The notes beneath the pieces are model-generated. The model was not told the origin of the DNA. It saw only the letters and a program-made list of their open reading frames with translations, and did not search any database. Both the position numbers and the translations under genes were made by a program. Positions 1 through 59,642 of a stretch of DNA of 64,000 nucleotides are shown here, one piece after another. Positions within the stretch are counted from its first letter, which is position 1; every line of letters begins with the position of its first letter. Source of the stretch: Macrostomum lignano (taxonomy: Eukaryota); NCBI GenBank assembly GCA_002269645.1, contig NIVC01000875.1, positions 186,001 to 250,000 on the forward strand, given 5' to 3'.

Positions 1-719
1 GAAGACCGAGCAGCCGAACGCCCAGATGTCCGACTCTCTGCTGTACTGCTCGCATTCCGAGGTGCCGATTCCGAGCAGCTCTGGCGCCATGAAGCTCAAA
101 GTACCTTTCAATGACTCGGGAAAAGCTGAGTGGCGACTGACTGACTGCTCTAGCTTGATCGACAGGCCGAAGTCGATCAGCTTGATTCGCGTGTTGTCAG
201 CACAAACAATCATGTTCGAGCAGTTTATGTCTCTGTGGATCACGGGCGGCTGCCGGCTGTGCAGGTAGAGCAGCGTGCGGCAGATCTACGAGCGGTTGGT
301 CAGTGAGCAGTCATCATTCATGGAACATGGAACAGTAGCATCAAGGATGCACAATGCTCACCTGCTCGCTGAAGTCTCGAATCGTCAGCTCGTCGAGCGG
401 CTTGTTGTTGTCGATGAACCTCTCCAAGCTTCGGCCGTCCAGCAGCTCCATGAACACAACGACTGTGGCGGGCTCCGGCTGAGCCATGTGCAAGAACCTG
501 ACGATGTTGGGATGCCGCAGTCGGCACAGGTTTCTCTCGCTCTTGATAGCTTCATCGATATTCTTCGTTTTCGTCTCCTTCTTATCGCCGAGCTGCACAG
601 GCAGGTTGAGAGTCTTGGCGGCGCACCTGATGCCTCTGTCGGTGACAACTTCCTGGATGTCACCAAAAAATACTCTGACAACGAAGCGAACGGAGTCCCA
701 GCTCTCTCTGTAAACGGGA
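1..719 (-). CDS. Gene A kinase domain 2 (degenerate glycine loop), partial; 76-nt intron 286-361
   Basis: FVVRVFFGDIQEV replaces GxGxxG, while AAK, HRDINCSN, DFG and GTLSFMAPE are retained. Phase-2 acceptor TTTCCCAACAG at 720. Confidence 0.88.
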
Positions 720-3700
720 CTGTTGGGAAATTTCGAAAGTGAATCAGGATGCGTTGAGCTGCTCGGTAGAATATTGGTATCGCCTGGCAGACAGGCGTAA
801 ATGAGGAGATGCACGGGAGTAACAGCAAGTGGAGGGTTTTGTTGGATTTAGTATACCTTTTTGCAATCAATTTCGTCGTTTTTGCGTTCAATTTCGGCGC
901 GAGCGCTAGTGTGCAGTCTAAACAACTGAGCCATAGACACTGGGCAACTTTTGCGTTCAAATTCGGCCTTTTTGCGTCCTATTTCGGCAGCTTACGGCAT
1001 CAAACATACTTGCGGAGACGACTATAGGCCTGCTTTAGGAGACAAATTTTTCGTCCCACCCTCACTGAATTCGATCGAGTGAGAAAGTGTCTATGGCAAA
1101 AACATTCGAACTGTGCCCACAGTGCGGCCCATGTGATTGCGCTGCCGAAATAGGACGCAAAAAGGCCGAATTTGAACGCAAATGTTGCCCAGTGTCTATG
1201 GCTCAGTTGTTTGGACTGCACACTAGCGCTCGCGCCGAAATTGAACGCAAAAACGACGAAATTGATTGCAAAAAGGTATATTCAGTAACTCAGCTTCCAC
1301 AGAAGCCTCACAGATTCTCAGGAACTCTCTCGAACTCTTTCTGAGTCTGAGCAAACTTCTGCTTTATTAAATCAAATTAAGCACAATTTTTCTTTCCTGG
1401 GCTTGAGGCTGGCGTCTGAGTGCATATTTCTCAAAGTAGGAGACGCATCCTTAGCGTAAGCACAGTAAGTCTGCTTGACAACTGATAAAAAAGCGCAAAA
1501 CTGGTGCCACATCTGCATTAGCATCATATCGCATAGGCATCTAAGGCTAGCCCAGTAACTGTACATTTCTACCTGACGATGAGGAACTCGTGCCCCATCA
1601 GCTCCAGAGCAGACTTTCTGCTTTTGCGGTCCATGGCGGTGCAGCGGCTGTAGAAGTCCTGCAGCTCCTCTGAGCAGCCCGTCGGCAGGGCGGGGGCGCC
1701 GCTGCTTCTCAGCCTTTCGGGCAGCGTGTGAAGCATTTTGTGCTCAGCGAAGGGCCGCCTGCCCGAGACCATCTGGAAGACCGAGCAGCCGAACGCCCAG
1801 ATGTCCGACGCTCTGCTGTACCGCGGGCTGTCCGACTCTTCCGGTGCCAGCAGCTCCGGAGCCAAGAAGCTCAGAGTGCCTTTGGGGGTGGCTTTGGAGT
1901 CCGAGATGTGGGTGACTGACTCCAGCTTGATTGACAGGCCAAAGTCGATCAGCTTGATTCGCGTGTTGTCAGCACAAACAATCATGTTCGAGCAGTTTAT
2001 GTCTCTGTGGATCACGGGCGGCTGCCGGCTGTGCAGGTAGAGCAGCGCGCGGCAGATCTACGAGCGGTCGGTCAGTGAGCAGTCATCATTCATGGAACAT
2101 GGAACAGTAGCATCAAGGATGCACAATGCTCACCTGCTCGCTGAAGTCTCGAATCGTCAGCTCGTCCAGCGGCTTGTTGTTGTCGATGAACCTCCCCAAG
2201 CTTCGGCCGTCCAGCAGCTCCATGAACACAACGACTGTGGCGGGCTCCGGCTGAGCGATGTGCAAGAACCTGACGATGTTGGGATGCTGCAGTTGGCACA
2301 GGTTTCTCTCGCTCTCGACAGCTCTGTGGATCTCTGTGCTCACAGAGGTCAGCTCGTCACCGAGCTGCACAGGCAGTCTGAGAGTCTTGGCAGCGCACGT
2401 GACGCCCGTGTCAGTTCGAACTTCGTGAACTTCGCCGAAGCCACCGCGACCGATGAGGCGAACGGCGTCCCAGCGTTCCAGGAGCGGGGGGCTTTCGAGT
2501 CTGAGGGGATGCGAATTGAGACAATGAGGGAAAATTTGCATGCTGTAGCAGTGTGTGCTGTAGCTGTGTGCTGTAGCTGTGTGCTGTAGCTGTGTGTGCT
2601 GTAGCTGTGTACTGAAGGAACTCACGGCACTGCCAGAGGCTCGTCAAAGTAAATCTTGCCGTCGTACCTAAAAATCCAGTGCGGAGTCTGAGGTCCGGAG
2701 ATATCTTTAATTTTAACAGAGAAAAACAGAAAACTTTCAGCTTTTAAAAAATAACTCAACTGTCACAGAAAACTGCTTGCTGTTGTCTCACAGCTCGCAG
2801 GCAGCTGAACATTAACATTCAACTGGCAATCTGCAGTCAAACTGCACTGCAAACTCCCTCAATGCAGCTCAGTCAGTGTCTGCTGCCCATTTAAACTACA
2901 AAAATAAAAAAATGCCCACTCAGAGCAACTGCAGTCAGCTGCTCAATATTCAATCATAAATTACAGCATGATTTTATCAATGATAAATCAAGGTCAGAGA
3001 GACATTCTCAGTCGCCATGGAAACTCACCCACGCAGCAGCTCGGCCAGTTCGCTCTTTCCGTTCTGTGTGGCCAAATCCAGCGCAGTCCTGCCGTCTCTG
3101 TCCTTCAGGCTCCAATCCGCCCCTGAGTCCAGCAGAACCCGACCGACTGCGGCGGCGGTGTCGGGAGGCGCACTCATGGCTGCTTCCATGAGTGGCGTGG
3201 ATTCACAGCAATCCCTGGCATTGGCGGAGGCTCCGGCAGTCAGCAGAGCGGAGGCTGCGGCAGAATTGCCAGCACCGGCTGCAAGGAGCAGGCAACTGTC
3301 AGCCCATATATTTGCACAGGTGGGGTCACCCAGCTGCACCAGCTGCTCCCACAGAGCCTCATCACCGCACGAGCTGTTCTGAGCTGCCCACATCAACGCG
3401 GTGCGACCCAATTCGTCAGGCAGGTCGCAGCCGTCGCAGGTCGCCGCTCGCCGCAGCCCCGCCGAGTCGCCCGCCTCGGCCAGCCGCCGCAGTTCCTTAC
3501 GATCCGCCTCCTCCTGCAAAGGCGAGCGGGAAATTTGAGCACAGCTGCTCAGCTGCAGCCGCATCGGCACCGCAGATGCCGCTCACCTGGGCTGTCAGGC
3601 CGGAAATCTCGCCGAGTGCATCTACGACCAGCCGCATCTCCCTGCAACAGCAAAAATGAGCAGCGAATTCGCAATTATCTCAAATCCGGCAACTACGATC

Positions 3701-4898
3701 GCAAAAAAAATTCATGATAAATTTAGTAAACAGAGATTTCAAATTATCTGAGCTGCTTGCAGATGGAGTTTCCAAGAGGACTGCAGCAGCTCTGCAACAA
3801 TCAGCATTGGCGAGAGCGCATCCGACTTCTCACACGCAGCTCATTTTCCATTTCTTCAGCATGATTTTCCTTCCACCTCACAATGTCTCACAAAGCACTC
3901 ACGCACAGCCTCCCAGTTCTCCATCTGCAGCTCAACCCACACACTCTTACTGCACACTGAGGCCCTACAGCTTCCATTCTCGACTCAGATCAACCGGCAC
4001 CCCATTGGCTGCGAGGCAGCCAGCCAATCACAGCTCTCGCCCATCAAGCAGTCAGTCAGAGACAAGCTCAGCTGACTGGCTCTGATTGGCTGGCCTGAGA
4101 CTGCAGCTTTGGCCACCCCAGCCGAATGCTGAAAAACTTGATGGACACAGCAGCGAACTGCTCACTCACCGCTCGATGTAGCTGGCCAGCTCTGAGTGGC
4201 CGCTGAGCCTCGCCAGTTCCGACGCCGTCCGACCCTGGCGATCCTTCAGTCCGAGCAGCTCCGACCTCTTCGAGTTTCCGTGCTCCTTGCACTCATTGAA
4301 CCTATCCTGCCTGAGCAGGTGCAGCAGGTGCTTGGCGCATTTCCAGCTTCCAGTCCGCGCCGCCTCCATCAGCGGAGTGGCGCCGTTGTCGTTCTGCAGC
4401 CACTTCGCATCGAACGAAAGCAGCGTCAGCAGCCGCAAGTGGTTACTCCGGGCTGCCAGGTGCGCAGCCGTGTCGCCGTTCGAGTCAGCCGCCCTGGGGT
4501 TCGCGCCCAGCTCAAATAAGTACAAGATGCACTTTTCAGTGTGCACGGGAGTCTCAGGAGCGTCGGCCACCCACATGAGGACGGTCCGACGAGCTGCATC
4601 AGCGCTGGTGACCAGCTGGCGCGTTGCCAGCCGCCGTACCTGGTCGAAGTCACCTTGGATGACGTCATTGGCGAGAGTCTGGAGATCGGCTGGTGAGTCT
4701 CCGACGCTTGCCCGGTTGCTGGGGTCCGGCTGAGTGAGTTCCGTCAACTACAATTGAGGCACCCAAGCTGCACATTCAAACATGTGAGTGAATTCCTGCA
4801 ACTGCAGTCAAGCCTACAAATATATTATGCTTCAATTTGCTCACTTAAACTTTACTTACTCTTTCGTCAGGAAATGATGTTGGCGCTTGCTCTGCCAT
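1..4898 (-). CDS. Gene A: ankyrin-repeat + tandem MAP3K-like protein kinase (3' end runs off the window)
   Basis: Exons with GT-AG borders and matching phases: 4860-4898 (MAEQAPTSFPDER), 4170-4678 (alternative acceptor 4747), 3587-3641, 3029-3513, 2626-2667, 2134-2500, 1573-2057, 362-719, <1-285. Ankyrin motifs (GxTPLMxAA, GRTALDLA) and kinase motifs (GRGGFG, AAK, HRD, DFG, APE). The kinase1-kinase2 join is inferred. Confidence 0.8.
854..1278. mobile_element. MITE (Tc1/mariner-type TA target), 425 bp
   Basis: 138-bp terminal inverted repeats (854-991 and 1141-1278, 2 mismatches), termini TACC...GGTA, TA duplication at 852-853 and 1279-1280. The empty site is visible in gene B (GGATATCA-TA-TTCAGT near 15550). 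Confidence 0.9.
1569..2500 (-). CDS. Gene A kinase domain 1 (STE/MAP3K-like Ser/Thr kinase), split by a 76-nt intron (2058-2133)
   Basis: LIGRGGFGEV, CAAK, ESE, HPNIVRF, HRDINCSN, KLIDFG, GTLSFLAPE, SDIWAFGCSVFQMVSG. Removing the intron joins FSEQ|ICRALLYLH. Confidence 0.92.
3029..4678 (-). CDS. Gene A ankyrin region (block A 4170-4678, linker 3587-3641, block B 3029-3513; about 4-5 repeats per block)
   Basis: NGDTAAHLAA, NGATPLMEAA, QGRTASELA in block A; LGRTALMWAA, ESTPLMEAA, DGRTALDLA in block B. Donors CG|GTGAGT and GG|GTGAGT. Confidence 0.9.
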
Positions 4899-5552: not shown

Positions 5553-5922
5553 CAGATTTGCTGACATAAAGATTTTCAGGGCTGCTGTGGGGCAGGCAGA
5601 TTTGCTGACATAAAGATTGTCAGGGCTGCTGTAGGGCAGATTTGCTGACATAAAGATTGTCAGGGCTGCTGTAGGGCAGATTTGCTGACATAAAGATTGT
5701 CAGGGCTGCTGTAGGGCAGATTTGCTGACATAAAGATTGTCAGGGCTGCTGTAGGGCAGATTTACTGACATAAAGATTGTCAGGGCTGCTGTAGGGCAGA
5801 TTTGCTGACATAAAGATTGTCAGGGCTGCTGTAGGGCAGATTTGCTGACATAAAGATTGTCAGGGCTGCTGTAGGGCAGATTTGCTGACATAAAGATTGT
5901 CAGGGCTGCTGTGGGGCAGATT
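5553..5922. repeat. 40-bp minisatellite, about 9 copies
   Basis: Unit GTAGGGCAGATTTGCTGACATAAAGATTGTCAGGGCTGCT. Confidence 0.95.
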
Positions 5923-14482: not shown

Positions 14483-15423
14483 TTAGTGCTGTGAGTCAGA
14501 CTTTTTCCTCAAGAACTCGTGCTCCAACAGCTTTTCTGCCGAGTGTCTCTCACTGCGGTCCTTGGCGGTGCAGCGGCTGTAGAAATCCTGAAACTCTGCG
14601 GACCGGCCCTCCGGCAGGGCGGGGGCGCCCCTCCTGTAAAGATCAAGTGCCATTTCCCAGAAGTTTTTTACTTTTGAGAACGGTTTGGTACCGGAGGCCA
14701 TCTGGAAGACCGAGCAGCCGAACGCCCAGATGTCCGACTCTCTGCTGTACTGCTCGCATTCCGAGGTGCCGATTCCGAGCAGCTCTGGCGCCATGAAGCT
14801 CAAAGTACCTTTCAATGACTCGGGAAAAGCTGAGTGGCGACTGACTGACTGCTCTAGCTTGATCGACAGGCCGAAGTCGATCAGCTTGATTCGCGTGTTG
14901 TCAGCACAAACAATTATGTTCGAGCAGTTGATGTCTCTGTGGATCACGGGCGGCTGCCGGCTGTGCAGGTAGAGCAGCGTGCAGCAGATCTACGAGCGGT
15001 TGGTCAGTGAGCAGTCATCATTCATGGAACATGGAACAGTAGCATCAAGGATGCACAATGCTCACCTGCTCGCTGAAGTCTCGAATCGTCAGCTCGTCGA
15101 GCGGCTTGTTGTTGTCGATGAACCTCTCCAAGCTTCGGCCGTCCAGCAGCTCCATGAACACAACGACTGTGGCGGGCTCCGGCTGAGCGATGTGCAAGAA
15201 CCTGACGATGTTGGGATGCCGCAGTCGGCACAGGTTTTTCTCGCTCTCGACAGCTCTGTGGATCTCTGTGCTCACAGAGATTTGGTCATCACCGAGCTGC
15301 ACAGGCAGTCTGAGAGTCTTGGCGGTGCACCTGATGCCTCTGTCGGTGACAACTTCCTGGATGTCACCAAAGCATCCTCTTGCAACGAACCGAGTGGAGT
15401 CCCAGCTCTTCCTGAAAATGGAG
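14483..15423 (-). CDS. Gene B kinase domain 2 (altered glycine loop ARGCFG)
   Basis: FVARGCFGDIQEV, TAK, HRDINCSN, DFG, GTLSFMAPE; intron 14990-15065; stop at 14483-14485. Confidence 0.9.
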
Positions 15424-18400
15424 CTGTTGGGAACATTGGAAAGCGACTCAGAAAGCGTTGAGCTGCTATTCAGACTTTTTGCATTGCCTGACAGACAGAC
15501 TAAAATTAGGGGATGCACGGGCGTCACTGCAGTTGGAGGATTTTGTCGGATATCATATTCAGTAAAACGCATCTGACACAGCAGCCCCACAGATTCCCAG
15601 GAACTCCCTCGAACTGTCTACGTCTGAGCAGGGATTTCGCTTTATCAATGCAGTATAGGCACAATTTTATTTTTCTGAGGTTCAAGCTAACACCTCTCAA
15701 TGCTCACTGCTCAATTTAGGTGGCGCATCTTTAGCGTGAGCACAGTGAGCCCGCATGACTGGTTATAAAACAATGCAACTCCGTTCTCACCTATGCATTA
15801 GCATCATATCGCATAGGCATCTAAGGCTAGCCCAGTAACTGTACATTTCTACCTGACGATGAGGAACTCGTGCCCCATCAGCTCCAGTGCAGACTTTCTG
15901 CTTTTGCGGTCCATGGCGGTGCAGCGGCTGTAGAAGTCTTGCAGCTCCACTGAGCAGCCCGTCGGCAGGGCGGGGGCGCCGCTGCTTCTCAGCCTTTCGG
16001 GCAGCGTGTGAAGCATTTTGTGCTCAGCGAAGGGCCGCCTGCCCGAGACCATCTGGAAGACCGAGCAGCCGAACGCCCAGATATCCGACTCTCTGCTGTA
16101 CCGCGGGCTGTCCGACTCTTCCGGTGCCAGCAGCTCCGGAGCCAAGAAGTTCAGAGTGCCTTCGGGGGTGGCTTTGGAGGCTGAGATGTGGCTGACTGAC
16201 TGCTCCAGCTTGACTGACAGGCCAAAGTCGATCAGCTTGATTCGCGTGTTGTCAGCACAAACAATTATGTTCGAGCAGTTGATGTCTCTGTGGATCACGG
16301 GCGGCTGCCGGCTGTGCAGGTAAAGCAGCGCGCGGCAGATCTACGAGCGGTCGGTCAGTGAGCAGTCATCATTCATGGAACATGGAACTGGAGCATCAAG
16401 GATGCACAATGCTCACCTGCTCGCTGAAGTCTCGAATCGTCAGCTCGTCCAGCGGCTTGTTGTCGATAAACCTCCCCAAGCTTCGGCCGTCCAGCAGCTC
16501 CATGAATACAACGACTGTGGCGGGCTTCGGCTGAGCGATGTGCAAGAATCTGACGATGTTGGGATGCTGCAGTCGGCACAGGTTTTTCTCGCTCTCGACA
16601 GCTCTGTGGATCTCTGTGCTCACAGAGGTTTGGTCATCACCGAGCTGCACAGGCAGTCTGAGAGTCTTGGCAGCGCACGTGACGCCCGTGTCAGTTCGAA
16701 CTTCCTGGACTTCGCCGAAGCCTCCTCGGCCGATGAGGCGAACGGCGTCCCAGCGCTTCAGGAACGGAGGACCTTCGGGTCTGAGGGAATGCGAATTGAA
16801 GCAATGAGGGATAATTTGCATGCTGTAGCTGTCTGTGCTGTAGCTGTGTGCTGTTGCTGTGTGCTGTAGCTGTGTGTTGTAGCTGTGTGTGCTGTAGCTG
16901 TGTGTGCTGTAGCTGTGTGCTGTAGCTGTGTGCTGTAGCTGTGTGCTGTAGCTGTGTGTGCTGTAGCTGTGTGCTGTAGCTGTGTGTGCTGTAGCTGTGT
17001 GTGCTGAAGGAACTCACGGCGGTGCCAGAGACTCCTCGAAGTAAATCTTGCCGTCGTACCTAAATAGGCAGTGCGGAGTCTGAAGTCAAGAGGGAATTCA
17101 GTTGAGAGCCCATGCTCTGTGCTTCATTTCTTCATTTTGTTTTAATTAACTATGAAACAGATTTCATTAATACTTTTGTTTTATTGTAAAAAATGATATT
17201 AGCAGAAAAGCACAAAAAATTTCAGATGTTGAAATTAAACTCAACTGTCACAGCAAAATGTTTGCTGGTGTCTCACAGCTCGCAGGCAGCTGAACATTAA
17301 TATTCAACTGGCAATCTGCAGTCAAACTGCACTGCAAACTCCCTCAATGCAGCTCAGTCAGTGTCTGCTGCCCATTTAAACTACAAAAATGTTAAAATGC
17401 CCACTCAGAGCAACTGCAGTCAGCTGCTCAATATTCAATCATAAAGTACAGCATGATTTTATCAATGATAAATCAAAGTCAGAGAGACATTCTCAGTCGC
17501 CATGGAAACTCACCCACGCAGCAGCTCAGCCAGTTCGATATTTCCCTTCTGTGTGGCCAAATACAGCGCAGTCCTGCCGTCTCTGGTCTTCAGGTTCCAA
17601 TCCGCCCCTGAGTCCAGCAGAACCCGACCCACTGCGGCGGCGGTGTCGGGGGGCGCAATGATGGCTGCCAGCATGAGGGGCGTGAATTCAGCCCGACCCC
17701 TGGCATTGGCGGAGGCTCCGGAAGCCAGCAGAGCGGAGGATGCGGCAGAATTGCCAGCCTCGGCTGCCCAGTGCAGGCAACTTGTAGCCCATATGGTCGC
17801 ACAGGTGGGGTCACCCAGCAGCACCAGCTGCTCCCACAGAGCCTCATCTCCGCACGAGCTGTTCTCAGCAGCCCACGTCAACGCAGTGCGACCCTCATGG
17901 TCAGGCAGGTCGCAGCTGCCGCGGGTCACCGCTCGCCGCAGCCCCGCCGAGTCGCCCGCCTTGGCCAGCCGCCGCAGTTCCTGTCGATCTGCCTCCTCCT
18001 GCAAAAGCGAGCGGGAAATTTGAGCACAGCTGCTCAGCTGCAGCCGCATCGGCACCGCAGATGCCGCTCACCTGGTCTGTCAGACCGGAGATCCTGCCAG
18101 ATGCATCCACAAGCAGCCACATCTCCCTGCAACAGCAAAAATGAGCAGCGAATTTCCAATTTTCTCAAATCCGACAACTACGATCGCCAAAATAAATATT
18201 TATGATAAATTTAGTAAGCAGAATAAATTCCTAACTATCTGAGCTGCTCGCAGATGGAGTTTCCAAGAGAACTGCAGCAGCTCTGCGACAATCAGCATTG
18301 AGAGCGCATCCGACTTCTCATACGCAGCTCATTTTCCATTTCTGCAGCATGAGTTTCCTTCCATCTCACAATGTCTCCAAAAAAGCACGTACGCACAGTC

Positions 18401-19486
18401 CCTACAGTTTCCACTCTCGACTGAGATCAGCCGGCACCCCATTGGCTGTGAGGCAGCCAGCCAATCACATCTCTCGCCCATCAAGCAGTCAGACAGAGAC
18501 AAGCTCAGCTGACTGGCTCTGATTGGCTGGCCTGAGACTGCAGGTCTGGCCACCCCAGCCGAATGCTGCAAAACTTGATGGACACAGCAGCGAACTGCTC
18601 ACTCACCGCTCGATGTAGCTGGCCAGCTCTGAGTGACCACTGCGACTCGCCAGGTCCGACGCCGTCCGACCCTCGCGATCCTGCAGTCCGAGCAGCAGCG
18701 ACCTCTTTGAGTTTCCGTGCTGAAAAAACTCATTGAATCTTATCTGCCTGAGCAGATGCAGCAGGTGCTTGGCGCATTTCCAGCTTCCAGTCCGCGCCGC
18801 CTCCATCAGCGGAGTGGCGCCGTTGTCGTTCCGCAGCCACTTCGCATCGAACGACAGCAGCGTCAGCAGCCGCAGGTGGTCCCGACGGGCTGCCAGGTGC
18901 GCAGCCGTGTCGCCGTTCGCGTCAGCCGCCTTGGGTTTCGCGCCCAGCTCAAATAAGTACAAGATGCACTTTTCAGTGTGCACGGGAGTCTCAGGAGCGT
19001 CGGCCACCAGCATGAGGACGGTCCGACGAGCTGCATCAGCGCTGGTGACCAGCTGGAGCGTTGCCAGCCGCCGCACCTGGCCGAAGTCACCTCGGATGAC
19101 GTCGTGGGCGAGAGTCTGGAGATCGGCTGGTGAGGATCTGACGCTTGCCCGGTTGGTGGGGTCCGGCTGAGTGAGCTCCTGCAACTGCAATTGAGGCACC
19201 CAAGCTGCTCATTCAAACAGGTGAGTGAGTCTTTGCAACTACAGTGGAACCTCCTTCAGGTATTAATGTGTTTCAATTTGGTCACTTTAACGTCACTTAC
19301 TTCTTCGTCAAGTAGTGGCCTTGGTGGCTTTGGTGGCTTTGGTGGCTTTGGTGGCTTTGGTGGCTTTGGTGGCTTTGGTGGCTTTGGTGGCTTTGGTGGC
19401 TCTCCTAGTGAACTTCGTCGTCTTATTGGTGGTGATGGTGGTGGTGATGCTGGTGGTGGTGGTGGTAGTCGCCCTCGCTCTGCCAT
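14483..19486 (-). CDS. Gene B: Pro-rich N-terminus + ankyrin repeats + tandem MAP3K-like kinases (997 aa if fully spliced)
   Basis: Exons 19301-19486, 18607-19115, 18072-18126, 17514-17998, 17018-17059, 16417-16780, 15853-16340, 15066-15423 and 14483-14989 sum to 2994 nt, open, ending KKSDSQH*. Confidence 0.8.
15849..16780 (-). CDS. Gene B kinase domain 1
   Basis: LIGRGGFGEV, AAK, HRDINCSN, DFG, GTLNFLAPE; 76-nt intron 16341-16416. Confidence 0.92.
16820..17005. repeat. Intronic (GCTGTAGCTGTGT) microsatellite in intron 5; homologs at 2541-2610, 28655-28984, 45110-45335, 56975-57060
   Basis: Same motif at the same intron position in all five genes, with lengths of about 70-330 bp. Confidence 0.9.
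17514..19115 (-). CDS. Gene B ankyrin region (two blocks plus linker exon)
   Basis: Same exon sizes (509/55/485 nt) and ankyrin motifs as gene A. Confidence 0.9.
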
Positions 19487-27694: not shown

Positions 27695-28615
27695 CTACCC
27701 GCACGTCAGGAACTCGTGCTCCAGCAGCTGCTGCGCTGAGCTTCTCCCCTTGCGGTCATTGGCGGTGCAGCGGCTGTAGAAATCCCTCAGCTCTGCGGAC
27801 CGGCCGTCCGGCAGGGCGGGGGCGCCCCTCCTGACGATCAGCTGGGCCATTTCTAACAGGCTTTTGGCGTTCGCGAACGGCCTCTCACCGGAGGCCATCT
27901 GATAGACCGAGCAGCCGAACGCCCAGATGTCCGACTCTCTGCTGTACTGCACGCTGTCCGACTCTCCCGCTCCAAGCAGCTCTGGCGCCATAAAGTTCAG
28001 AGTGCCTTTGGGTGACTGAGTGGAGGCTGAGAAGTGGCTGACTGACAGCTTGATTGACAGACCGAAGTCGATCAGCTTGATTCGCGTGTTGTCAGCACAA
28101 ACAATTATGTTCGAGCAGTTGATGTCTCTGTGGATCACGGGCGGCTGCCGGCTGTGCAGGTAGAGCAGCGCGCGGCAGATCTGCGAGCGGTCGGTCAGTG
28201 AGCAGTCATCATTCATGGGAACATGGAACAGGAGCATCAAGGATGCACAATGCTCACCTGCTTGTTGAAGTCTCGAATCTTTGGCTCGTCCAGCGGCTTG
28301 TTGCCGATAAACCTCTCCAAGCTTTGGCCGTCCAGCAGCTCCATGAACACAACGACTGTGGCGGGCTCCGGCTGAGCGATGTGCAAGAACCTGACGATGT
28401 TGGGATGCCGCAGTCGGCACAGGTTTCTCTCGCTCTCGATAACTTCATTTATTTTCTTCTTTTCCGTCTCATTCTGATCAGTTCTGAGCAGTCTGAGAGT
28501 CTTGGCAGCGCACGTGACGCCCGTGTCAGTTCGAACTTCCTGGACTTCGCTGAAGCCTCCGCGGCCGATGAGGTGAACGACATCCCAGCGCTCCAGGAAC
28601 AGGGGGCCTTCGGGT
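27695..28615 (-). CDS. Gene C kinase domain
   Basis: LIGRGGFSEV, AAK, HRDINCSN, DFG, GTLNFMAPE; 77-nt intron 28181-28257. Confidence 0.92.
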
Positions 28616-33525: not shown

Positions 33526-33544
33526 ATTTCAAGAATTTTCATCC

Positions 33545-44125: not shown

Positions 44126-45070
44126 TCAACGATTCAAAGAATTTTTCGCCATGAACTCGTGTCCCATCAGATCCAGAGCAGACTTTCTGCTTTTGCGGTC
44201 CATGGCGGTGCAGCGGCTGTAGAAGTCCTGCAGCTCTGCGGACCGGCCGTCCGGCAGGGCGGGGGCGCCCCTCCTGTCGATCAGCTGGGCCATTTCTAAG
44301 AAGCTCCTGGCGTTCGCGAACGGCCTCGCGCCGGACGCCATCTGGAAGACCGAGCAGCCGAACGCCCAGATGTCCGACTCTCTGCTGTACTGCACACTGT
44401 CCGACTCTCCCGCTCCGAGCAGCTCTGGCGCCATGAAGTTCAGAGTGCCTTTGGGTGACTGAGTGGAGGCTGATATGTGGCTGACTGACTGCTCCAGCTT
44501 GATTGACAGGCCGAAGTCGATCAGCTTGATTCGCGTGTTGTCAGCACAAACAATTATGTTCGAGCAGTTGATGTCTCTGTGGATCACGGGCGGCTGCCGG
44601 CTGTGCAGGTAGAGCAGCGCGCGGCAGATCTGCGAGCGGTCGGTCAGTGAGCAGTCATCATTCATGAGAACATGGAACAGTAGCATCAAGGATGCACAAT
44701 TCTCACCTGCTCGCTGAAGTTCCGAATCGTCGGCTCGTTCAGCGGCTTGTTGTCGATAAGCCTCTCCAAGCTCCGGCCGTCCAGCAGCTCCATGAACACA
44801 ACGACTGTAGCGGGCTCCGGCTGAGCGATGTGCAAGAACCTGACGATGTTGCGATGCCGCAGTCGGCACAGGTTTCTCTCGCTCTCGACAGCTCTGTGGA
44901 TCTCTGAGCTTACAGAGGGCAGCTCATCACCGAGCTGCACAGGCAGTCTGAGAGTCTTGGCAGCGCACGTGACGCCCGTGTCAGTTCGAACTTCCTGGAC
45001 TTCGCCGAAGCCTCCGCGGCCGATGAGGCGAACGGCGTCCCAGCGCTTCAGGAACAGGGGGCCTTCGGGT
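44126..45070 (-). CDS. Gene D kinase domain
   Basis: LIGRGGFGEV, AAK, HRDINCSN, DFG, GTLNFMAPE; intron 44630-44706. Confidence 0.92.
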
Positions 45071-47847
45071 CTGAGGGGATGCGAATTGAGGCAATGAGGC
45101 ATAATTTGCATGCTGTAGCTGTGTGTGCTGTAGCTGTGTGCTGTAGCTGTGTGTGCTGTAGCTGTGTGCTATAGCTGTGTGCTGTAGCTGTGTGTGCTGT
45201 AGCTGTGTGCTGTAGCTGTGTGCTGTAGCTGTGTGTGCTGTAGCTGTGTGCTGTAGCTGTGTGCTGTAGCTGTGTGTTTTGTTGCTGTGTGCTGTAGCTG
45301 TGTATTTTGTTGCTGTGTGCTGTAGCTGTATGGGCTGAAGGAACTCACGGCAGTTCCAGAGGCTCGTCGAAGTAAATCTTGCCGTCGTACCTAAATAGGC
45401 AGTGCGGAGTCTTAAGTTAGGTTGGAATTCAGGTGAGAGCCCATGCCCTGTACTTCACTTCTACATTTTGCTTAAATTACCTATGGAACATATTTTTAAA
45501 TACTTTTTGTAAGATCGTAAAAAGCTGTAATATTAACAGAAAAGCACCAAGAAAATCACATTGTAAAATTAAACTCAAATTTCACACCAAAATGCTTGCT
45601 GGTGTCTCACAGGCAGCTGAGCATTAATATTCAACTGGCAATCTGCAGTCAAACTGCACTGCAAACTCCCTCAATGCAGCTCAGTCAGTGTCTGCTGCCC
45701 ATTTAAACTACAAAAATGTAAAAATTCCCACTTAGAGCAACTGCAGTCAGCTGCTCAATTTTCAATCATAATGTAGAACGAGCGAGGTTTGAGATTGCGA
45801 GAAAACCGACTTGGCGCTCAGAACTGACAATCGATATATACACAAGCACGTACAAATAGGACTGCGAACAACATTAAAATATTTAGATGCATAGAATGCT
45901 CACAATAAATTACAGCATAATGTTTATCAACGATAAATCAAAGTCAGAGAGACATTCTCAGTCGCCATGGAAACTCACCAAAGCAGCAGCTCAGCCAGTT
46001 CGCCCTTTCTCCTCTGTGTGGCCAAATACAGCGCAGTATTGCCGTGTCCGTCCTTCAGGCTCCAATCCGCCCCTGAGTCCAGCAGAACCCAACCGACTGC
46101 GGCGGCGGTGGCGTGGGGCGCCCAGATGGCCGCCTGCATGAGGGGTGGGAATTCCCACTGACCCCTGGCATTGGCGGAGGCTCCGGCAGCCAGCAGAGCG
46201 GAGGCTGCGACAAAATTGCCAGCCTTGGCTGCACGGTGCAGGCAACTGGTAGTCCATCTATTCGCACAGGTGGGGTCACCCAGCTGCACCAGCTGCTCCC
46301 ACAGAGCCTCATCACCGCATGAGCTGTTCCGAGCTGCCCACATCAACGCGGTGCGACCCTCATCGTCAGGCAGGTCGCAGTTTCCGCGGGTCGCCGCTCG
46401 CCGCAGACCCGCCGAGTCGCCCACCCGGGCCAGCCGCTGCAGTTCTTGTCGATCCGCCTTCTCCTGCAAAGGCAAGTGGGAAATTTGAGCACAGCGGCTC
46501 AGCTGCAGCCGTATCGACACCGCAGATGTCACTCACCTGGTCTGTCAGGCCGGAGATCCCGCCATCTGCATCCACAACTAGCCGCATCTCCCTGCAACAG
46601 AAAATTTGCAATTTTCTCAAATCCGACAACTACGATTGCCCAAGTAAAATTTCAAGTCTGGAGAGAATTTTCATGAGAAATTTCGTAAACTGAAATGTCT
46701 AATTATGTAAGCTGTCCCCAGATGGAGTTTCCAAGAGGACTGCAGAAGCTCTGCAACAATCAGCATTAGCGAGAGCGCATCCGACTTCTCACAAGCAGCT
46801 CATTTTCCATTTCTGCAGCATGAGTTTCCTTCCATCTCAGGATGTCTCACAAAGCACTCACGCACAGCCTCCCAGTTCTCCATCTGCAGCTTAACCCACA
46901 CACTCTCTTTGCACACCGACGCCCTACAGCTTCCATTCTCAACTGAGATCAAGCCTGCACCCCATTGGCTGGGAGGCAGTCAGCCAATCACAGCTCTCGC
47001 ACATCAAGCAGTCAGACAGAGACAAGCTCAGCTGACTGGCTCTGATTGGCTGGCCTGAGACTGCAGCTCTGGCCACCCCAGCCGAATGCTGCAAAACTTG
47101 ATGGACACAGCAGCGAACTGCTCACTCACCGCTCGATGTAGCTGGCCAGCTCTGAGTGACTGCTGAACCTCGCCAGGTCCGACGCCGTCCGACCCTGGCG
47201 ATCCTTCAGTCCGAGCAGCTCCGACCTCTTCGAGTTTCCGTGCTCCTTGCACTCATTGAACCTATCCTGCCTGAGCAGGTGCAGCAGGTGCTTGGCGCAT
47301 TTCCAGCTTCCAGTCCGCGCCGCCTCCATCAGCGGAGTGGCGCCGTTGTCGTTCTGCAGCCACTTCGCATCGAACGACAGCAGCGTCAGCAGCCGCAAGT
47401 GGTTACTCCGGGCTGCCAGGTGCGCAGCCGTGTCGCCGTTCGAGTCAGCCGCCTTGGGGTTCGCGCCCTGCTCAAATAAGTACAAGATGCACTTTTCAGT
47501 GTGCACGGGAGTCTCAGGAGCGTCGGCCACCAGCATGAGGACGGTCCAACGAGCTGCATCAGCGCTGGTGACCAGCTGGCGCGTTGCCAGCCGCCGCACC
47601 TGGCCGAAGTCACCTCGGATGACGTCGTGAGCGAGAGTCTGGAAATTCAAACATGTGAGTAGGTTCCTGCAACTGCAACTGAGGCTAGGCACCGAAGCTG
47701 AACAGACGAGTAAGGAGGTAAGTAAGGACGAAGTAAAGATATATATTTAAATTTACTTCTTCAACGCACACAAACAAATATATTTCTTCAATCAAGATAA
47801 AGTTAATGTAATACCTTATCCGGTTCGTTAGAGGCTCCAACACCCAT
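44126..47847 (-). CDS. Gene D: ankyrin repeats + single MAP3K-like kinase (about 663 aa)
   Basis: Exons 47815-47847 (MGVGASNEPDK), 47130-47638, 46537-46591, 45979-46463, 45349-45390, 44707-45070 and 44126-44629 sum to 1992 nt, open; ends MAKNSLNR*. Confidence 0.85.
45772..45904. mobile_element. 133-bp solo LTR (TRIM/Gypsy-like) in gene D intron 4
   Basis: TGT...ACA termini and 4-bp TSD ATAA (45768-45771 and 45905-45908). The empty site TCATAAATTACAGC is seen in gene A. Confidence 0.75.
45979..47638 (-). CDS. Gene D ankyrin region
   Basis: Ankyrin motifs as in the paralogs; clear acceptor TTTCCAG|ACT at 47638. Confidence 0.9.
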
Positions 47848-49560: not shown

Positions 49561-49614
49561 GTCGACAAAGATCTTCCAACCGAACTCCGCATCAGCACCG
49601 AACTCCCAGCAGCA

Positions 49615-54216: not shown

Positions 54217-55155
54217 TTAGTGCTGTGAGTCAGACTTTTTCCTCAAGAACTCGTGCTCCAACAGCTTTTCTGCCGAGTGTCTCTCACTGCGGTCCTTGGC
54301 GGTGCAGCGGCTGTAGAAATCCTGAAACTCTGCGGACCGGCCCTCCGGCAGGGCGGGGGCGCCCCTCCTGTAAAGATCAAGTGCCATTTCCCAGAAGTTT
54401 TTTACTTTTGAGAACGGTTTGGTACCGAAAGCCATCTGGAAGACCGAGCAGCCGAACGCCCAGATGTCCGACTCTCTGCTGTACTGCTCGCATTCAGAGG
54501 TGCCGATTCCGAGCAGCTCTGGCGCCATGAAGTTCAAAGTACCTTTCAATGACTCGGAAAAAGATGAGTGGCGACTGACTGACTGCTCCAGCTTGATTGA
54601 CAGGCCGAAGTCGATCAGCTTGATTCGCGTGTTGTCAGCACAAACAATTATATTCGAGCAGTTGATGTCTCTGTGGATCACGGGCGGCTGCCGGCTGTGC
54701 AGGTAGAGCAGCGCGCGGCAGATCTGCGAGCGGTCGGTCAGTGAGCAGTCATCATTCATGGGAACATGGAACAGGAGCATCAAGGATGCACAATGCTCAC
54801 CTGCTCGCTGAAGTCTCGAATCTTTGGTTCTTTCAGCGGCTTGTTGTCGATGAACCTCTCCAAGCTTCGGCCGTCCAGCAGCTCCATGAACACAACGACT
54901 GTGGCGGGCTCCGGCTGAGCGATGTGCAAGAACCTGACGATGTTGGGATGCCGCAGTCGGCACAGGTTTCTCTCGCTCTTGATAGCTTCATCGATATTCT
55001 TCGTTTTCGTCTCCTTCTTATCGCCGAGCTGCACAGGCAGGTTGAGAGTCTTGGCGGCGCACCTGATGCCTCTGTCGGTGACAACTTCCTGGATGTCACC
55101 AAAAAATACTCTGACAACGAAGCGAACGGAGTCCCAGCTCTCTCTGTAAACGGGG
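54217..55155 (-). CDS. Gene E kinase domain 2 (degenerate glycine loop VRVFFG)
   Basis: FVVRVFFGDIQEV, AAK, HRDINCSN, DFG, GTLNFMAPE; ends KKSDSQH*. Confidence 0.9.
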
Positions 55156-55289
55156 CTGTTGGGAAATTTCGAAAGTGAATCAGGATGCGTTGAGCTGCTC
55201 GGTAGAATATTGGTATCGCCTGGCAGACAGGCGTAAATGAGGAGATGCACGGGAGTAACAGCAAGTGGAGGGTTTTGTTGGATTTAGTA

Positions 55290-55714
55290 TACCTTTTTGC
55301 AATCAATTTCGTCGTTTTTGCGTTCAATTTCGGCGCGAGCGCTAGTGTGCAGTCTAAACAACTGAGCCATAGACACTGGGCAACTTTTGCGTTCAAATTC
55401 GGCCTTTTTGCGTCCTATTTCGGCAGCTTACGGCATCAAACATACTTGCGGAGACGACTATAGGCCTGCTTTAGGAGACAAATTTTTCGTCCCACCCTCA
55501 CTGAATTCGATCGAGTGAGAAAGTGTCTATGGCAAAAACATTCGAACTGTGCCCACAGTGCGGCCCATGTGATTGCGCTGCCGAAATAGGACGCAAAAAG
55601 GCCGAATTTGAACGCAAATGTTGCCCAGTGTCTATGGCTCAGTTGTTTGGACTGCACACTAGCGCTCGCGCCGAAATTGAACGCAAAAACGACGAAATTG
55701 ATTGCAAAAAGGTA
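55290..55714. mobile_element. Same 425-bp MITE at the homologous site in gene E
   Basis: Sequence and flanks match 854-1278; TA TSD at 55288-55289 and 55715-55716. Confidence 0.9.
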
Positions 55715-56004
55715 TATTCAGTAACTCAGCTTCCACAGAAGCCTCACAGATTCCCAGGAACTCTCTCGAACTCTTTCTGAGTCTGAGCAAACTTCTGCTT
55801 TATTAAATCAAATTAAGCACAATTTTTCTTTCCTGGGCTTGAGGCTGGCGTCTGAGTGCATATTTCTCAAAGTAGGAGACGCATCCTTAGCGTAAGCACA
55901 GTGAGTCTGCTTGACAACTGATAAAAAAGCGCAAAACTGGTGCCACATCTGCATTAGCATCAAATCGCATAGGCATCTAAGGCTAGCCCAGTAACTGTAC
56001 ATTT

Positions 56005-56936
56005 CTACCTGACGATGAGGAACTCGTGCCCCATCAGCTCCAGTGCAGACTTTCTGCTTTTGCGGTCCATGGCGGTGCAGCGGCTGTAGAAGTCCTGCAG
56101 CTCCTCTGAGCAGCCCGTCGGCAGGGCGGGGGCGCCGCTGCTTCTCAGCCTTTCGGGCAGCGTGTGAAGCATTTTGTGCTCAGCGAAGGGCCGCCTGCCC
56201 GAGACCATCTGGAAGACCGAGCAGCCGAACGCCCAGATATCCGACTCTCTGCTGTACCGCGGGCTGTCCGACTCTTCCGGTGCCAGCAGCTCCGGAGCCA
56301 AGAAGCTCAGAGTGCCTTTGGGGGTGGCTTTGGAGTCCGAGATGTGGGTGACTGACTCCAGCTTGATTGACAGGCCAAAGTCGATCAGCTTGATTCGCAT
56401 GTTGTCAGCACAAACAATCATGTTCGAGCAGTTTATGTCTCTGTGGATCACGGGCGGCTGCCGGCTGTGCAGGTAGAGCAGCGCGCGGCAGATCTACGAG
56501 CGGTCGGTCAGTGAGCAGTCATCATTCATGGAACATGGAACAGGAGCATCAAGGATGCACAATGCTCACCTGCTCGCTGAAGTCTCGAATCGTCAGCTCG
56601 TCCAGCGGCTTGTTGTTGTCGATGAACCTCCCCAAGCTTCGGCCGTCCAGCAGCTCCATGAACACAACGACTGTGGCGGGCTCCGGCTGAGCGACGTGCA
56701 AGAACCTGACGATGTTGGGATGCTGCAGTTGGCACAGGTTTCTCTCGCTCTCGATAGCTCTGTGGATCTCTGTGCTCACAGAGGTTTGGTGATCACCGAG
56801 CTGCACAGGCAGTCTGAGAGTCTTGGCAGCGCACGTGACGCCCGTGTCAGTTCGAACTTCGTGAACTTCGCCGAAGCCACCGCGACCGATGAGGCGAACG
56901 GCGTCCCAGCGTTCCAGGAGCGGGGGGCTTTCGAGT
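56005..56936 (-). CDS. Gene E kinase domain 1
   Basis: LIGRGGFGEV, AAK, HRDINCSN, DFG, GTLSFLAPE; near-identical to gene A kinase 1. Confidence 0.9.
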
Positions 56937-57477
56937 CTGAGGGGATGCGAATTGAGACAATGAGGGAAAATTTGCATGCTGTAGCTGTGTGCTGTAGCTG
57001 TGTGCTGTAGCTGTGTGCTGTAGCTGTGTGTGCTGTAGCTGTGTGTGCTGTAGCAGTGTACTGAAGGAACTCACGGCACTGCCAGAGGCTCGTCAAAGTA
57101 AATCTTGCCGTCGTACCTAAAAATCCAGTGCGGAGTCTGAGGTCCGGAGAAATCTTTAATATTACCAGAGAAAAACAGAAAACTTTCAGCTTTTAAAAAA
57201 TAACTTAACTGTCACAGAAAACTGCTTGCTGTTGTCTCACAGCTCGCAGGCAGCTGAACATTAACATTCAACTGGCAATCTGCAGTCAAACTGCACTGCA
57301 AACTCCCTCAATGCAGCTCAGTCAGTGTCTGCTGCCCACTTAAACTACAAAAATTAAAAAATGCCCACTCAGAGCAACTGCAGTCAGCTGCTCAATATTC
57401 AATCATAAAATACAGCATGATTTTATCAATGATAAATCAAAGTCAGAGAGACATTCTCAGTCGCCATGGAAACTCAC

Positions 57478-59127
57478 CCACGCAGCAGCTCGGCCAGTTC
57501 GCTCTTTCCGTTCTGTGTGGCCAAATCCAGCGCAGTCCTGCCGTCTCTGTCCTTCAGGCTCCAATCCGCTCCTGAGTCCAGCAGAACCCGACCGACTGCG
57601 GCGGCGGTGTCGGGGGGCGCAATGATGGCTGCCAGCATGAGGGGCGTGAATTCCCACTGATCCCTGGCATTGGCGGAGGCTCCGGAAGCCAGCAGAGCGG
57701 AGGCTGCGGCAGAATTGCCAGCCATGGCTGCCCAGTGCAGGAAACTAACAGCTCATATAGCCACACAAGTGGGGTCACCCAGCAGCACCAGCTGCTCCCA
57801 CAGAGCCTCATCACCGCACGAGCTGTTCTCAGCTGCCCACATCAACGCGGTGCAACCCTCATGGTCAAGCAGGTCGCAGCTGCCGCGGGTCGCCGCTCGC
57901 CGCAGCCCCGCCGAGTCGCCCGCCTTGGCCAGCCGCTGCAGTTCCTGTCGATCCGCCTCCTCCTGCAAAAGCGAGCGGGAAATTTGAGCACAGCTGCTCA
58001 GCTGCAGCCGCATCGGCACCTCAGATGCCACTCACCTGGGCTGTCAGGCCAGTGATCTTGCCATCTCCATCGACAACCAGCCACATCTCCCTGCAATAGC
58101 AAAAATGAGCAGCGAATCTGCAATTTTTCAAGTCCGACAACTACGATTGCGAAAAAAGTTGTATGATATATTTGGCGAACATAAATTCCAAATTATCTGA
58201 GCTGCTCGCAGATGGAGTTTCTAAGAGGACTGCAGCAGCTCTGCAACAATCAGCATTGGCGAGAGCGCATCCGACTTCTCACACGCAGCTCATTTTCCAT
58301 TTCTGCAGCATGAGTTTCCTTCCATCTCAAAATGTCTCACAAAGCACTCACGCGCGGGCTCTCAGTTCTCCATCTGCAGCTCAACCCACACACTCTCTCT
58401 GCACACCGAGGCCCTACAGCTTCCATTCTTGACTGAGATCAACCGGCACCCCATTGGCTGGGAGGCAGTCAGCCAATCACAGCTCTCGCCCATCAAGCAG
58501 TCAGACAGAGACAAGCTCAGCTGACTGGCTCTGATTGGCTGGCCTGAGACTGCAGCTCTGGCCACCCTAGCCGAATGCTGCAAAACTTGATGGACACAGC
58601 AGCGAACTGCTCACTCACCGCTCGATGTAGCTGGCCAGCTCTGAGTGACCACTGCGCCTCGCCAGGTCCGACGCCGTCCGACCCTCGCGATCCTTCAGTT
58701 CGAGCAGCCGCGACCTCTTCGAGTTTCCGTGCTCAAAGCACTCATTGAACCTCCATTGTCTGAGCAGGTGCAGCAGGTGCTTGGCGCATTTCCAGCTTCC
58801 AGTCCGCGCCACCTCCATCAGCGGAGTGGCGCCGTTGTCGTTCCGCAGCCACTTCGCATCGAACGAAAGCAGCGTCAGCAGCCGCAGGTGGTCCCGACGG
58901 GCTGCCAGGTGCGCAGCCGTGTCGCCGTTCGCGTCAGCCGCTTTAGGGTTCGCGCCCAGCTCAAATAAGTACAAGATGCACTTTTCAGTGTGCACGGGAG
59001 TTTCAGGAGCGTCGGCCACCAGCATGAGGACGGTCCGACGAGCTGCATCAGCGCTGGTGACCAGCTGGCGCGTTGCCAGCCGCCGCACCTGGCCGAAGTC
59101 ACCTCGGATGACGTCGTGGGCGAGAGT
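57478..59127 (-). CDS. Gene E ankyrin region (interrupted by TGA at 57753-57755)
   Basis: Ankyrin motifs as in the paralogs; GDPTCVAI*AVSFLHWAA. Confidence 0.85.
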
Positions 59128-59193
59128 CTGGAGATCGGCTGCCGAGTCTCCGACGCTTGTCCAGTGTTTGGGGTACGGCTGAGTGAGTTTCTG

Positions 59194-59475
59194 CAACTGC
59201 AGTTGAGGCACCCAAGCTGCACATTCAAACATGTGAGTGATTTTATGCAACTGCAATTGAGACACTCAAGCTGCACATTCAAACATACGAATGAGTTCCT
59301 TCAACTGCAATTGGGGCACCCAAGCTGCACATTCAAACATTCGAATGAGTTCCTTCAACTGCAATTGGGGCACCCAAGCTGCACATTCAAACATGTGAGT
59401 GAATTCCTGCAACTGCAATTGAGACACTCAAGCTGCACATTCAAACATACGAGTGAGTTCCTGCGACTGCAATCA
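59194..59475. repeat. 54-bp tandem repeat (about 5 copies) in gene E intron 1
   Basis: Unit CAACTGCAATTGAGGCACCCAAGCTGCACATTCAAACATGTGAGTGAATTCCTG; about 1 copy in gene A (4745-4805). Confidence 0.9.
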
Positions 59476-59642
59476 AGCCTACAAAAATTAATATGCTGGA
59501 ATTAGCTCACATTAACTTCAATATGACTTTCAGGTAGAACCGGCGTTGAGTTAAAAGAAATTGGTAGTGAAAACAATGACGAAAAAGAGCCATGAAAACT
59601 TAGTCGGGAAGACGGTGGCGAAGGCTGCCCTCCCTCTGCCAT

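Follow-up and report, generated by a model that had tools for sequence, protein, structure and literature searches.

Several described systems combine parts of the proteins considered here. Among animals, ILK and TNNI3K carry N-terminal ankyrin repeats (ANK) followed by a kinase of the TKL group, and RIPK4 and ANKK1 carry a kinase followed by C-terminal ankyrin repeats. The tandem kinase proteins of plants belong to the RLK/Pelle kinase lineage, fungal NLR-like STAND proteins contain ANK, TPR or WD repeats, and DARPins serve as the structural reference. To our knowledge, flatworms are without a number of the canonical components of innate immunity and of extrinsic cell death, and their intracellular recognition of microbes or of non-self is largely uncharted. 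FADD and the DED-caspases have been lost in the flatworm phylum, caspases that carry an ankyrin pro-domain are a flatworm novelty, and a caspase with a kinase pro-domain is found in Macrostomum lignano (PMC11463336). Here we describe a stretch of 64,000 nucleotides (nt) from M. lignano (contig NIVC01000875.1, positions 186,001–250,000; hereafter the window, meaning the whole stretch analysed), which holds a tandem array of five genes coding for ankyrin repeats fused to one or two kinase domains. We give an even chance to the reading that they belong to a Macrostomum-specific, tandemly arrayed family of soluble receptor-like kinases, in which a variable-ligand sensor would be joined to a kinase output.

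Five Paralogs Arranged Head to Tail

Self-comparison of the window and a tblastn search with the spliced gene B model revealed five paralogs (A to E), placed head to tail and all on the minus strand. The plus-strand reading gave no domain-bearing frames and was discarded. The five co-oriented paralogs proposed in the first-pass annotation of this DNA stand, with their strand now specified. They comprise gene A (1..4898, truncated at the 3′ end by the start of the window), the complete gene B (14483..19486, 1020 amino acids [aa]), gene C (27695..31151, 661 aa), gene D (44126..47847, 663 aa), and gene E (54217..59642). All have ten ankyrin repeats, followed by a single kinase in C and D and by kinase 1 (K1) and kinase 2 (K2) in A, B, and E. 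Pfam matches to Ank_2, Ank, and Ank_4 correspond to the two large 5′ exons. The Pkinase match is divided between one exon for the N-lobe and one for the C-lobe; A, B, and E have it twice and C and D once, just as the earlier annotation had assigned the kinase domains. Fully open frames, of 661–1020 codons, were obtained for all copies but E. No transmembrane segment was predicted in the spliced products (19-residue Kyte–Doolittle maximum of 1.63), which agrees with the lack of one noted in the first-pass annotation. A scan of the window against Rfam turned up no RNA genes.

The exon boundaries of gene B were projected onto A, C, D, and E, and the introns are GT-AG in all five copies, with donors that are almost all GTGAG(T/C/A). 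The common exon scaffold was recovered in the sizes given before, namely 509 (or 578), 55, 485 (488 in C), 42, 358–367, and 482–507 nt. The 509-nt size of the first ankyrin exon holds for D, but in A, B, C, and E this exon is probably 578 nt long, with the acceptor ttgcag|TTGCAG and a short ATG exon upstream. This acceptor lies 69 nt upstream of the 509-nt start, which is found at an internal AG, and the longer form is likely because the RNA-seq-based paralog models P0077-79 start with MAxx...(K/R)LQELTQPDP.

GenBank presents the array as a single 48-kb gene (window 1-47847; locus L002, 10001-58069, in reverse orientation) with a 946-aa product, P0311. The Mlig_3_7 annotation is RNA-seq based, built from StringTie/TACO/Trinity transcripts and TransDecoder open reading frames (ORFs), and the assembly itself is redundant (PMC5730564). 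P0311 is a chimera in which residues 1-340 come from D, the next 439 from B (the end of ankyrin exon e3, the 42-nt exon e4, K1, and the K2 N-lobe), and the K2 C-lobe from A. The first 340 residues and the 439 contiguous ones are identical to the D and B copies of the window, one of the copy switches falls inside an exon, and copies C and E, as well as the true gene boundaries, are unannotated. This model nevertheless places exons of D, B, and A among the transcribed sequences and shows the joins of gene B from ANK through linker and K1 to K2. An exact look-up of the spliced models of A, B, C, and D in the protein collection gave no match, because GenBank has this single chimeric model for the whole array. 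As a consequence of the merging of the five genes, current resources give too low a count of the family and faulty models of its members.

A Hypervariable Ankyrin Surface

The AlphaFold2 model of gene D, obtained with 17 family sequences, has a predicted local distance difference test score (pLDDT) >90 at residues 8-365, which form ten helix-pair ankyrin repeats; the repeats noted before are confirmed, although their number had been put at about nine. They are disposed in two blocks of five with a beta hairpin between them (strands within D residues 186-193) that is encoded by the 55-nt micro-exon e2. The best solved-structure matches of this region are ankyrin-1/2 and DARPins. The micro-exon is located at 3587-3641 in A, 18072..18126 in B, 29842-29896 in C, 46537-46591 in D, and 58036-58090 in E (all minus), and exon e3, which codes for ankyrin block 2 (repeats 6-10), at 3029-3513, 17514..17998, 29281-29768, 45979-46463, and 57478-57962, respectively (minus). 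Both e2 and e3 outpace their flanking introns in divergence. For e2, nucleotide divergence reaches 18–22%, compared to 6–8% in the flanking introns (Fisher p 0.012–0.0005), and the tip of the hinge hairpin (LVVDAxGxISGL) is hypervariable.

Nonsynonymous (dN) and synonymous (dS) divergence were obtained solely as pairwise Nei–Gojobori counts among the five window copies. Their ratio (omega) was 0.3–0.9 in ankyrin block 1 and 0.83–1.5 in block 2 (whole e3). As an a-priori surface we took the positions randomised in DARPins (2, 3, 5, 13, 14, and 33), which amount to 24 codons in e3. At these codons dN was 0.24–0.57, against 0.045–0.105 in the rest of the exon, with dS of ~0.09 (binomial p 7e-3 to 3e-9). 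The same positions stand out by their entropy: in block 2 it was 2.02 bits at DARPin surface positions vs 0.60 elsewhere (permutation p<5e-5), while in block 1 the corresponding values were 0.65 and 0.42 bits. In the alignment of 37 family sequences the variable columns of block 2 are ankyrin positions 2, 3, 5, 10, 13, and 14 of repeats 7-10, within an invariant framework. A nonsynonymous excess localised to the surface, as looked for in receptor-type diversifying selection, is therefore present, and the pattern is the expected signature of diversifying selection and recombination acting on a binding surface. The idea of a variable sensor, put forward in the first-pass annotation, is strengthened by this excess and by hypervariability falling on the canonical binding surface of repeats 7-10.

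Divergent Kinase Domains

In each of the two kinase units, PF00069 matches the N-lobe exon as well as the C-lobe exon, with C-lobe E values of 2e-31 and 3e-32. K1 preserves the motifs GRGGFG (GRGGFS in the glycine-rich loop of gene C), AAK, HRD, N, DFG, and APE. The glycine-rich loop of K2 is degenerate; gene B has ARGCFG at this place, while A and E have VRVFFG. All copies, and the family members inspected, read HRDINCSN in the catalytic loop (e.g., 16300-16280, minus strand). Among solved structures the best match of the kinase domain was MAP3K2 (2.4e-26, 96 bits, ~30% identity), followed by WNK1 (92 bits), ASK1 (87), PLK4 (87), and PAK1 (85). The earlier label "STE11/MEKK-like" draws weak support from MAP3K2 being the top match, with a lead of only a few bits over WNK1, ASK1, PLK4, and PAK, and the domain should be read as a divergent, apparently STE-group-like Ser/Thr kinase. 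In A and E, the K2 segment from beta-3 to helix C (KKETKTKNIDEAIKSERNL; A 500-570, E 54940-55010, minus) resembles the single kinase of C (NETEKKKINEVIESERNL; 28400-28470, minus) and not K2 of B, which suggests a short gene-conversion tract between the C kinase and the A/E K2 N-lobe.

A Lineage-Specific Family Built on One Ankyrin Module

A search of 1.84 billion representative proteins found no close kinase relatives outside Macrostomum. All relatives at E<1e-50 came from M. lignano or from short environmental contigs, and the nearest non-Macrostomum kinases, ~32% identical, were multi-kinase protist proteins, so that the family is indeed lineage-specific, as initially suspected. A dinoflagellate or protist source of the DNA, to which the co-oriented arrays and the abundance of satellites might have pointed, is excluded by the canonical GTGAGT introns and by the matches in M. 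lignano. The profile of the ankyrin module alone retrieved ~70 M. lignano proteins at E<1e-50, ahead of generic ankyrin proteins. The module is recognised by an invariant CAKHLLHLL in repeat 4, the hinge hairpin, and a YDGKIYF linker after which the effector follows; the window copies carry this signature and are 80–89% identical to their M. lignano module relatives. It is common to several fusion types, all from M. lignano and with 40–85% identity, in which the effector is a kinase (P0077-82 and others, with 690–704 aa in P0077-79), a caspase (P0083, P0084, P0088, P0091, P0093, P0096, P0100, and P0102) or an SH3 domain (P0098). Other orders also occur, such as kinase-ANK-caspase (P0164) and kinase-kinase-caspase-ANK proteins. 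The ankyrin-caspase fusion, absent from the first-pass annotation, is the most informative context for the array. In the literature we found neither the kinase branch nor its hypervariability described.

Proposed Function and Its Main Rival

Ligand sensing, an active kinase, and a role for kinase 2 are our inference, as is any function in immunity or non-self recognition. In the mechanism that we propose, an N-terminal exon that is short and variable precedes ankyrin repeats 1-5, whose concave face, conserved among paralogs, would dock a common partner or regulate the protein's own kinase. The hypervariable beta-hairpin hinge between the blocks and block 2 would probably recognise variable ligands, with the variable concave face of repeats 6-10 as the putative ligand-recognition surface, which positive selection and recombination among the copies would have diversified. 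After a 14-residue linker comes the divergent, putatively STE-group-like kinase with its full catalytic motif set. The additional kinase of A, B, and E, degenerate in its glycine-rich loop, may have a regulatory or a pseudokinase-like role. When block 2 binds a variable ligand, kinase activity or clustering would change, and phosphorylation would pass the signal on. In the caspase-bearing paralogs the output of this sensor would be proteolysis or cell death.

What the sensor would recognise is the next question. The arms-race signature, the caspase paralogs, and the loss of the death-domain pathway make an immune role attractive, and on these sequence-based grounds we hold an immune or non-self function to be a tentative proposition, well short of an even chance. 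In its broadest form, one hypervariable ankyrin module fused combinatorially to tandem kinases, caspases or SH3 would constitute a cytosolic innate recognition system, a counterpart of the plant tandem-kinase and integrated-domain receptors that could offset the loss of FADD and DED-caspases, and the array in the window would be one diversifying cluster of it; this we regard as rather unlikely. If confirmed, the family would also provide the first ankyrin-sensor tandem-kinase architecture from an animal, convergent with the plant tandem-kinase resistance proteins. In any case the family offers a concrete lead, with dozens of members, recombining tandem arrays, an arms-race signature on the ankyrin surface, and interchangeable kinase, tandem-kinase or caspase outputs, and a tractable one, given that RNA interference, transgenesis, and a defined microbiota are available in M. 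lignano.

Several observations weigh against the sensor-kinase reading. Surface hypervariability is also expected for non-immune recognition, e.g., in reproductive conflict. The Asn of HRDINCSN replaces the catalytic-loop Lys of Ser/Thr kinases (HRDxKxxN), so that activity is not assured, and the kinase part of the AlphaFold2 model of D is poor (pLDDT 30–50). Omega is high throughout (0.3–0.67 in K1, 0.35–0.87 in K2, and 0.3–0.9 in the first ankyrin exon, e1), which indicates weak overall constraint, and the dN/dS of K2 does not by itself separate constraint from neutral change. The donor between the two kinases, CAG|GTAGAA, is weak compared to the GTGAG(T/C/A) used elsewhere, and its adjacency to a stop codon could be partly a coincidence. 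P0311, the sole model of the locus, mixes three paralogs and is thus not a faithful mRNA. Finally, the literature (gene identifiers in full texts and the supplements of PMC5816591) yielded no data on expression, localisation, ligands or enzymatic activity.

The main rival to the immune role keeps the same architecture and assigns the surface to a non-immune purpose, foremost reproductive conflict (sperm or seminal signalling) or else the regulation of an endogenous, fast-evolving partner. The surface dN excess, the tandem duplication, the pseudogenes, and the recombination are not specific to immunity, and tissue- or challenge-linked expression data were not found in the literature. In Macrostomum, genes connected with reproduction are fast-evolving, and nematodes provide an example of large lineage-specific kinase expansions with enrichment in sperm. 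On the other hand, the caspase fusions of the ankyrin module fit a path from sensor to cell death better than sperm signalling, and the flatworm loss of FADD and DED-caspases (PMC11463336) leaves a functional gap, and sensors of this kind could close it. Neither argument settles the matter, and we consider this rival to be doubtful but deserving of attention.

The Kinase 1 to Kinase 2 Junction

In A, B, and E the K1 C-lobe frame ends with ...HEFLIVR-TAG, and the in-frame TAG is contained in the donor GTAG of the K1-to-K2 intron (720-1572 in A, 15424..15852 in B, and 55156-56008 in E, minus; donor CAG|GTAGAA). In gene B the acceptor is caacag|C at 15423, with an alternative one 12 nt downstream. 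The GenBank model P0311 contains the junction LIV|SSIFRKSWD, i.e., CAG|GTAGAA joined to caacag|C at 15423. A different K2 N-lobe acceptor, tttcag|G, which would give an exon of 346 nt, was dropped; P0311 uses the site 12 nt upstream (358 nt), and both appear in P0153. This last protein, a UniProt model from another locus, has three tandem kinases and uses the K1-K2-type donor twice, with the two acceptors 12 nt apart. A kinase-kinase intron of the same position and phase (GAAAG|gtacag ... ctaacag|C) is found in BOX15_Mlig009993g1, a 58% identical paralog at locus L001. Furthermore, the ANK-kinase-kinase protein P0159 (1180 aa) is annotated as three near-identical copies, and the divergent paralogs P0155/P0297 are annotated as tandem kinases. 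K2-type domains with a degenerate glycine-rich loop (ARGCFG, VRVFFG or ARGFFG) group across loci in a clade of their own, and the K2 exons are without frameshifts, their one indel being in frame, compared to ~0.09 indels per substitution in introns. The tandem-kinase product of A, B, and E is likely real. The ANK-kinase-kinase architecture first proposed thus has in its favour the in-frame models of A (971 aa), B (1020 aa), and E and the junction in P0311 and P0153, although a chimeric automated model and the paralogs are the sole source of splice support.

The alternative is that kinase 2 is an alternative 3′ module, with the 42-nt exon either joining the K1 pair or skipping to the K2 pair to give two single-kinase isoforms. 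Both N-lobe exons have phase-2 acceptors that fit the strong GTGAGT donor of the 42-nt exon, the K1 C-lobe ORF stops at the TAG with an AATAAA ~200 nt downstream in A, B, and E, and CAG|GTAGAA is the one weak donor where all others are GTGAG(T/C/A). A phase-2 "GT" arises at any stop preceded by G, which makes the K1-K2 frame fit unsurprising, and the C-terminal tail of K2, LRKKSDSQH, is similar to that of P0077, a paralog with a single kinase; in addition, those annotated relatives that are full-length and closely related have one kinase. Opposed to this are the direct join of the K1 C-lobe to the K2 N-lobe of gene B in the RNA-seq-derived P0311, the K1-K2-type junction present twice in P0153 via both acceptors, the tandem annotation of P0155/P0297 and P0159, and the equivalent position and phase of the L001 intron. 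We judge two exclusively single-kinase isoforms to be quite improbable and prefer the tandem product, although single-kinase and tandem isoforms could coexist.

A 429-nt element resembling a miniature inverted-repeat transposable element, with 140-nt terminal inverted repeats that are 99% complementary, is inserted in the K1-K2 intron of A (852-1280) and E (55288-55716) and is absent from B.

Birth, Death, and Reshuffling of Copies

The description of the array as a birth-and-death cluster is borne out by a copy with a nonsense codon, the loss of an exon, inserted transposons, and mosaic recombination. The ankyrin half of gene A is nearest to D (e1 dS 0.045) and its kinase half to E (K1 dS 0.020), the kinase half together with its introns being only 0–2% from E, and by these distances the ankyrin and kinase halves have been reshuffled between copies. 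Between B and E the introns have 17 indels per 182 substitutions, and the exons only three 3-nt in-frame indels. Since exon indels are this few and in frame relative to the intron rate, selection keeps the frames open. That the cluster is mostly evolutionary debris, i.e., recent, weakly constrained or decaying duplicates in a repeat-rich, redundant genome, with variability reflecting relaxed constraint, is very improbable: omega of 0.3–1.5 across segments, the nonsense codon of E and the lost exon acceptor of C, the transposon and satellite insertions within and between genes, and the redundancy of Mlig_3_7 (PMC5730564) would all suit it, but neutral decay predicts uniform dN ~ dS and not a 4–5-fold excess at binding-surface codons in a conserved framework, the exons have no frameshifting indels against ~0.09 indels per substitution in introns, four of the five copies are fully open at 661–1020 codons, and exons of A, B, and D occur in the transcript-derived P0311.

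The Individual Copies and Their Repeats

The exons of each copy are given here in the order of transcription (minus strand). Gene A has the 5′ exons 4898-4860 (ATG, MAEQAPTSFPDER), 4747-4170, 3641-3587 (55 nt), 3513-3029 (485 nt), and 2667-2626 (42 nt), and the kinase exons 2500-2134 (K1 N-lobe), 2057-1573 (K1 C-lobe), 719-362 (K2 N-lobe), and 285-1 (K2 C-lobe). Its last exon has 222 nt more outside the window, and completion from locus L002 gives an open 971-aa product. Gene B comprises 19486-19301 (ATG), 19184-18607, 18126-18072, 17998-17514, and 17059-17018, followed by the kinase exons 16780-16417, 16340-15853, 15423-15066, and 14989-14483 (stop). Its N-terminus reads MAERG..., and its first coding exon (19301-19486, minus) contains an expanded CCACCAAAG microsatellite, equivalent to (PPK)8 in a proline-rich N-terminus, which the other copies are without.

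Gene C is made of 31151-31131 (ATG, MEGEASK), 31015-30438, 29896-29842, 29768-29281 (488 nt), 28615-28258, and 28180-27695. A remnant of the 42-nt exon lies near 29013-28992 without an in-frame acceptor, and skipping it keeps the frame. Gene D consists of 47847-47815 (ATG, MGVGASNEPDK), 47638-47130 (509 nt), 46591-46537, 46463-45979, 45390-45349, 45070-44707, and 44629-44126. It has lost the extra 69-nt segment, and the mini-exon MGVGASNEPDK joins the 509-nt form. This N-terminus fits the N-myristoylation consensus, and the product of D may be myristoylated. The first exons of D (47815-47847) and C (31131-31151, both minus) and their promoters are of one kind, with an upstream TATAAAA box, and unlike those of A, B, and E. 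In C (MEGEAS...) the Gly2 of the MGVGAS... of D is lost, and the ANK-caspase paralog P0088 also has MGSGSS.

Gene E, the N-terminus of which reads MAEGGQ..., has the 5′ exons 59642-59511 (ATG), 59196-58619, 58090-58036, 57962-57478, and 57116-57075, and the kinase exons 56936-56570, 56493-56009, 55155-54801, and 54723-54217. At 57755-57753, within the exon 57962-57478, it carries the nonsense codon TGA in place of the TGG of A, B, and D, and it is probably a very recent pseudogene. Upstream of its first ankyrin exon (59181-59473), a 54-bp unit that includes the acceptor ttgcag is repeated 5.4 times in tandem and provides several candidate acceptors.

The remaining sequence is rich in repeats. 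Between D and E there is a coding region of the long terminal repeat (LTR)-retrotransposon type (48361-51991, plus strand) with three consecutive ORFs, for a zinc knuckle and aspartic protease, a reverse transcriptase and RNase H, and an integrase, the polyprotein frame being broken twice. The intron after the 42-nt exon contains a (TGCTGTAGCTGTGTG)n minisatellite (16821-17001, 28656-28984, and 45111-45329) of a length that varies among the copies examined. At the end of the window, 60251-61759 and 62477-64000 are inverted arms of ~1.5 kb, 98.8% identical and composed mostly of a degenerate (TCTCTCC)n/(GGAGAGA)n satellite, and related CT-rich arrays are found at 8720-9280 and 22100-22570. Intergenic minisatellites are many and unrelated, with periods of 13–71 nt and up to 54 copies (for example at 5553-5923, 11138-12264, 24949-25577, 32713-34511, 38317-38953, 41332-42300, and 42743-43194). 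Some of these blocks are common to the upstream regions of different copies, from which it follows that the duplicated unit included intergenic DNA.

Comparison with Known Systems

The likeness to fungal STAND proteins and DARPins lies in the position of the variation, which in the window genes falls on the target-binding groove of an otherwise conserved scaffold. They differ from the fungal proteins in that there is no NACHT/NB-ARC switch, the output is a kinase or caspase, and the repeats are not near-identical cassettes. To the MAP3Ks (STE11/MEKK and ASK) they are linked by their best solved-structure match, MAP3K2, with ASK1 close behind; the few-bit lead over WNK1, PLK4, and PAK, the ~30% identity, and the HRDINCSN loop with Asn for Lys set them apart.

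ILK and TNNI3K also have ankyrin repeats and a kinase in one soluble polypeptide, in the same ANK-then-kinase order. However, the 60 best matches of the kinase domain to solved structures, which are of STE, WNK, and PLK type, include neither them nor RIPK4/ANKK1. Moreover, those four proteins are conserved and low-copy, whereas the window family is multi-copy (dozens of paralogs), restricted to Macrostomum, and hypervariable.

The parallel with the plant tandem kinases (Rpg1, WTK1/Yr15, Sr60, Sr62, and Pm24), which the first-pass annotation had drawn from their role as immune receptors, holds for the presence of two kinase domains in one cytosolic protein, and the degenerate ATP-binding loop of K2 recalls their kinase-pseudokinase pairs. 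Both groups are also lineage-specific and fast-evolving. The parallel fails at the kinase lineage, since the window kinases are STE-like and no RLK/Pelle or IRAK kinase was found among the best 60 solved-structure matches, and recognition in the flatworm proteins lies most plausibly in the N-terminal ankyrin domain. The comparison is best understood as an analogy of architecture and not as homology.

The nearest relatives are the ANK-caspases of M. lignano itself, which have the same two-block ankyrin module with 40–75% identity (P0083, P0084, P0088, P0091, and others). Two caspase paralogs, P0033 and P0084, even have the 14-residue YDGK(I/V)YF linker, followed by a caspase instead of a kinase. 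The published study of flatworm ANK-caspases takes the ankyrin region as a caspase pro-domain, and the kinase branch, the arrays, and the hypervariability are not part of it (PMC11463336). Judged by module and linker, the ANK-caspases are true paralogs of the sensor part of the window genes, which differ from them in the effector, here a single or tandem kinase.

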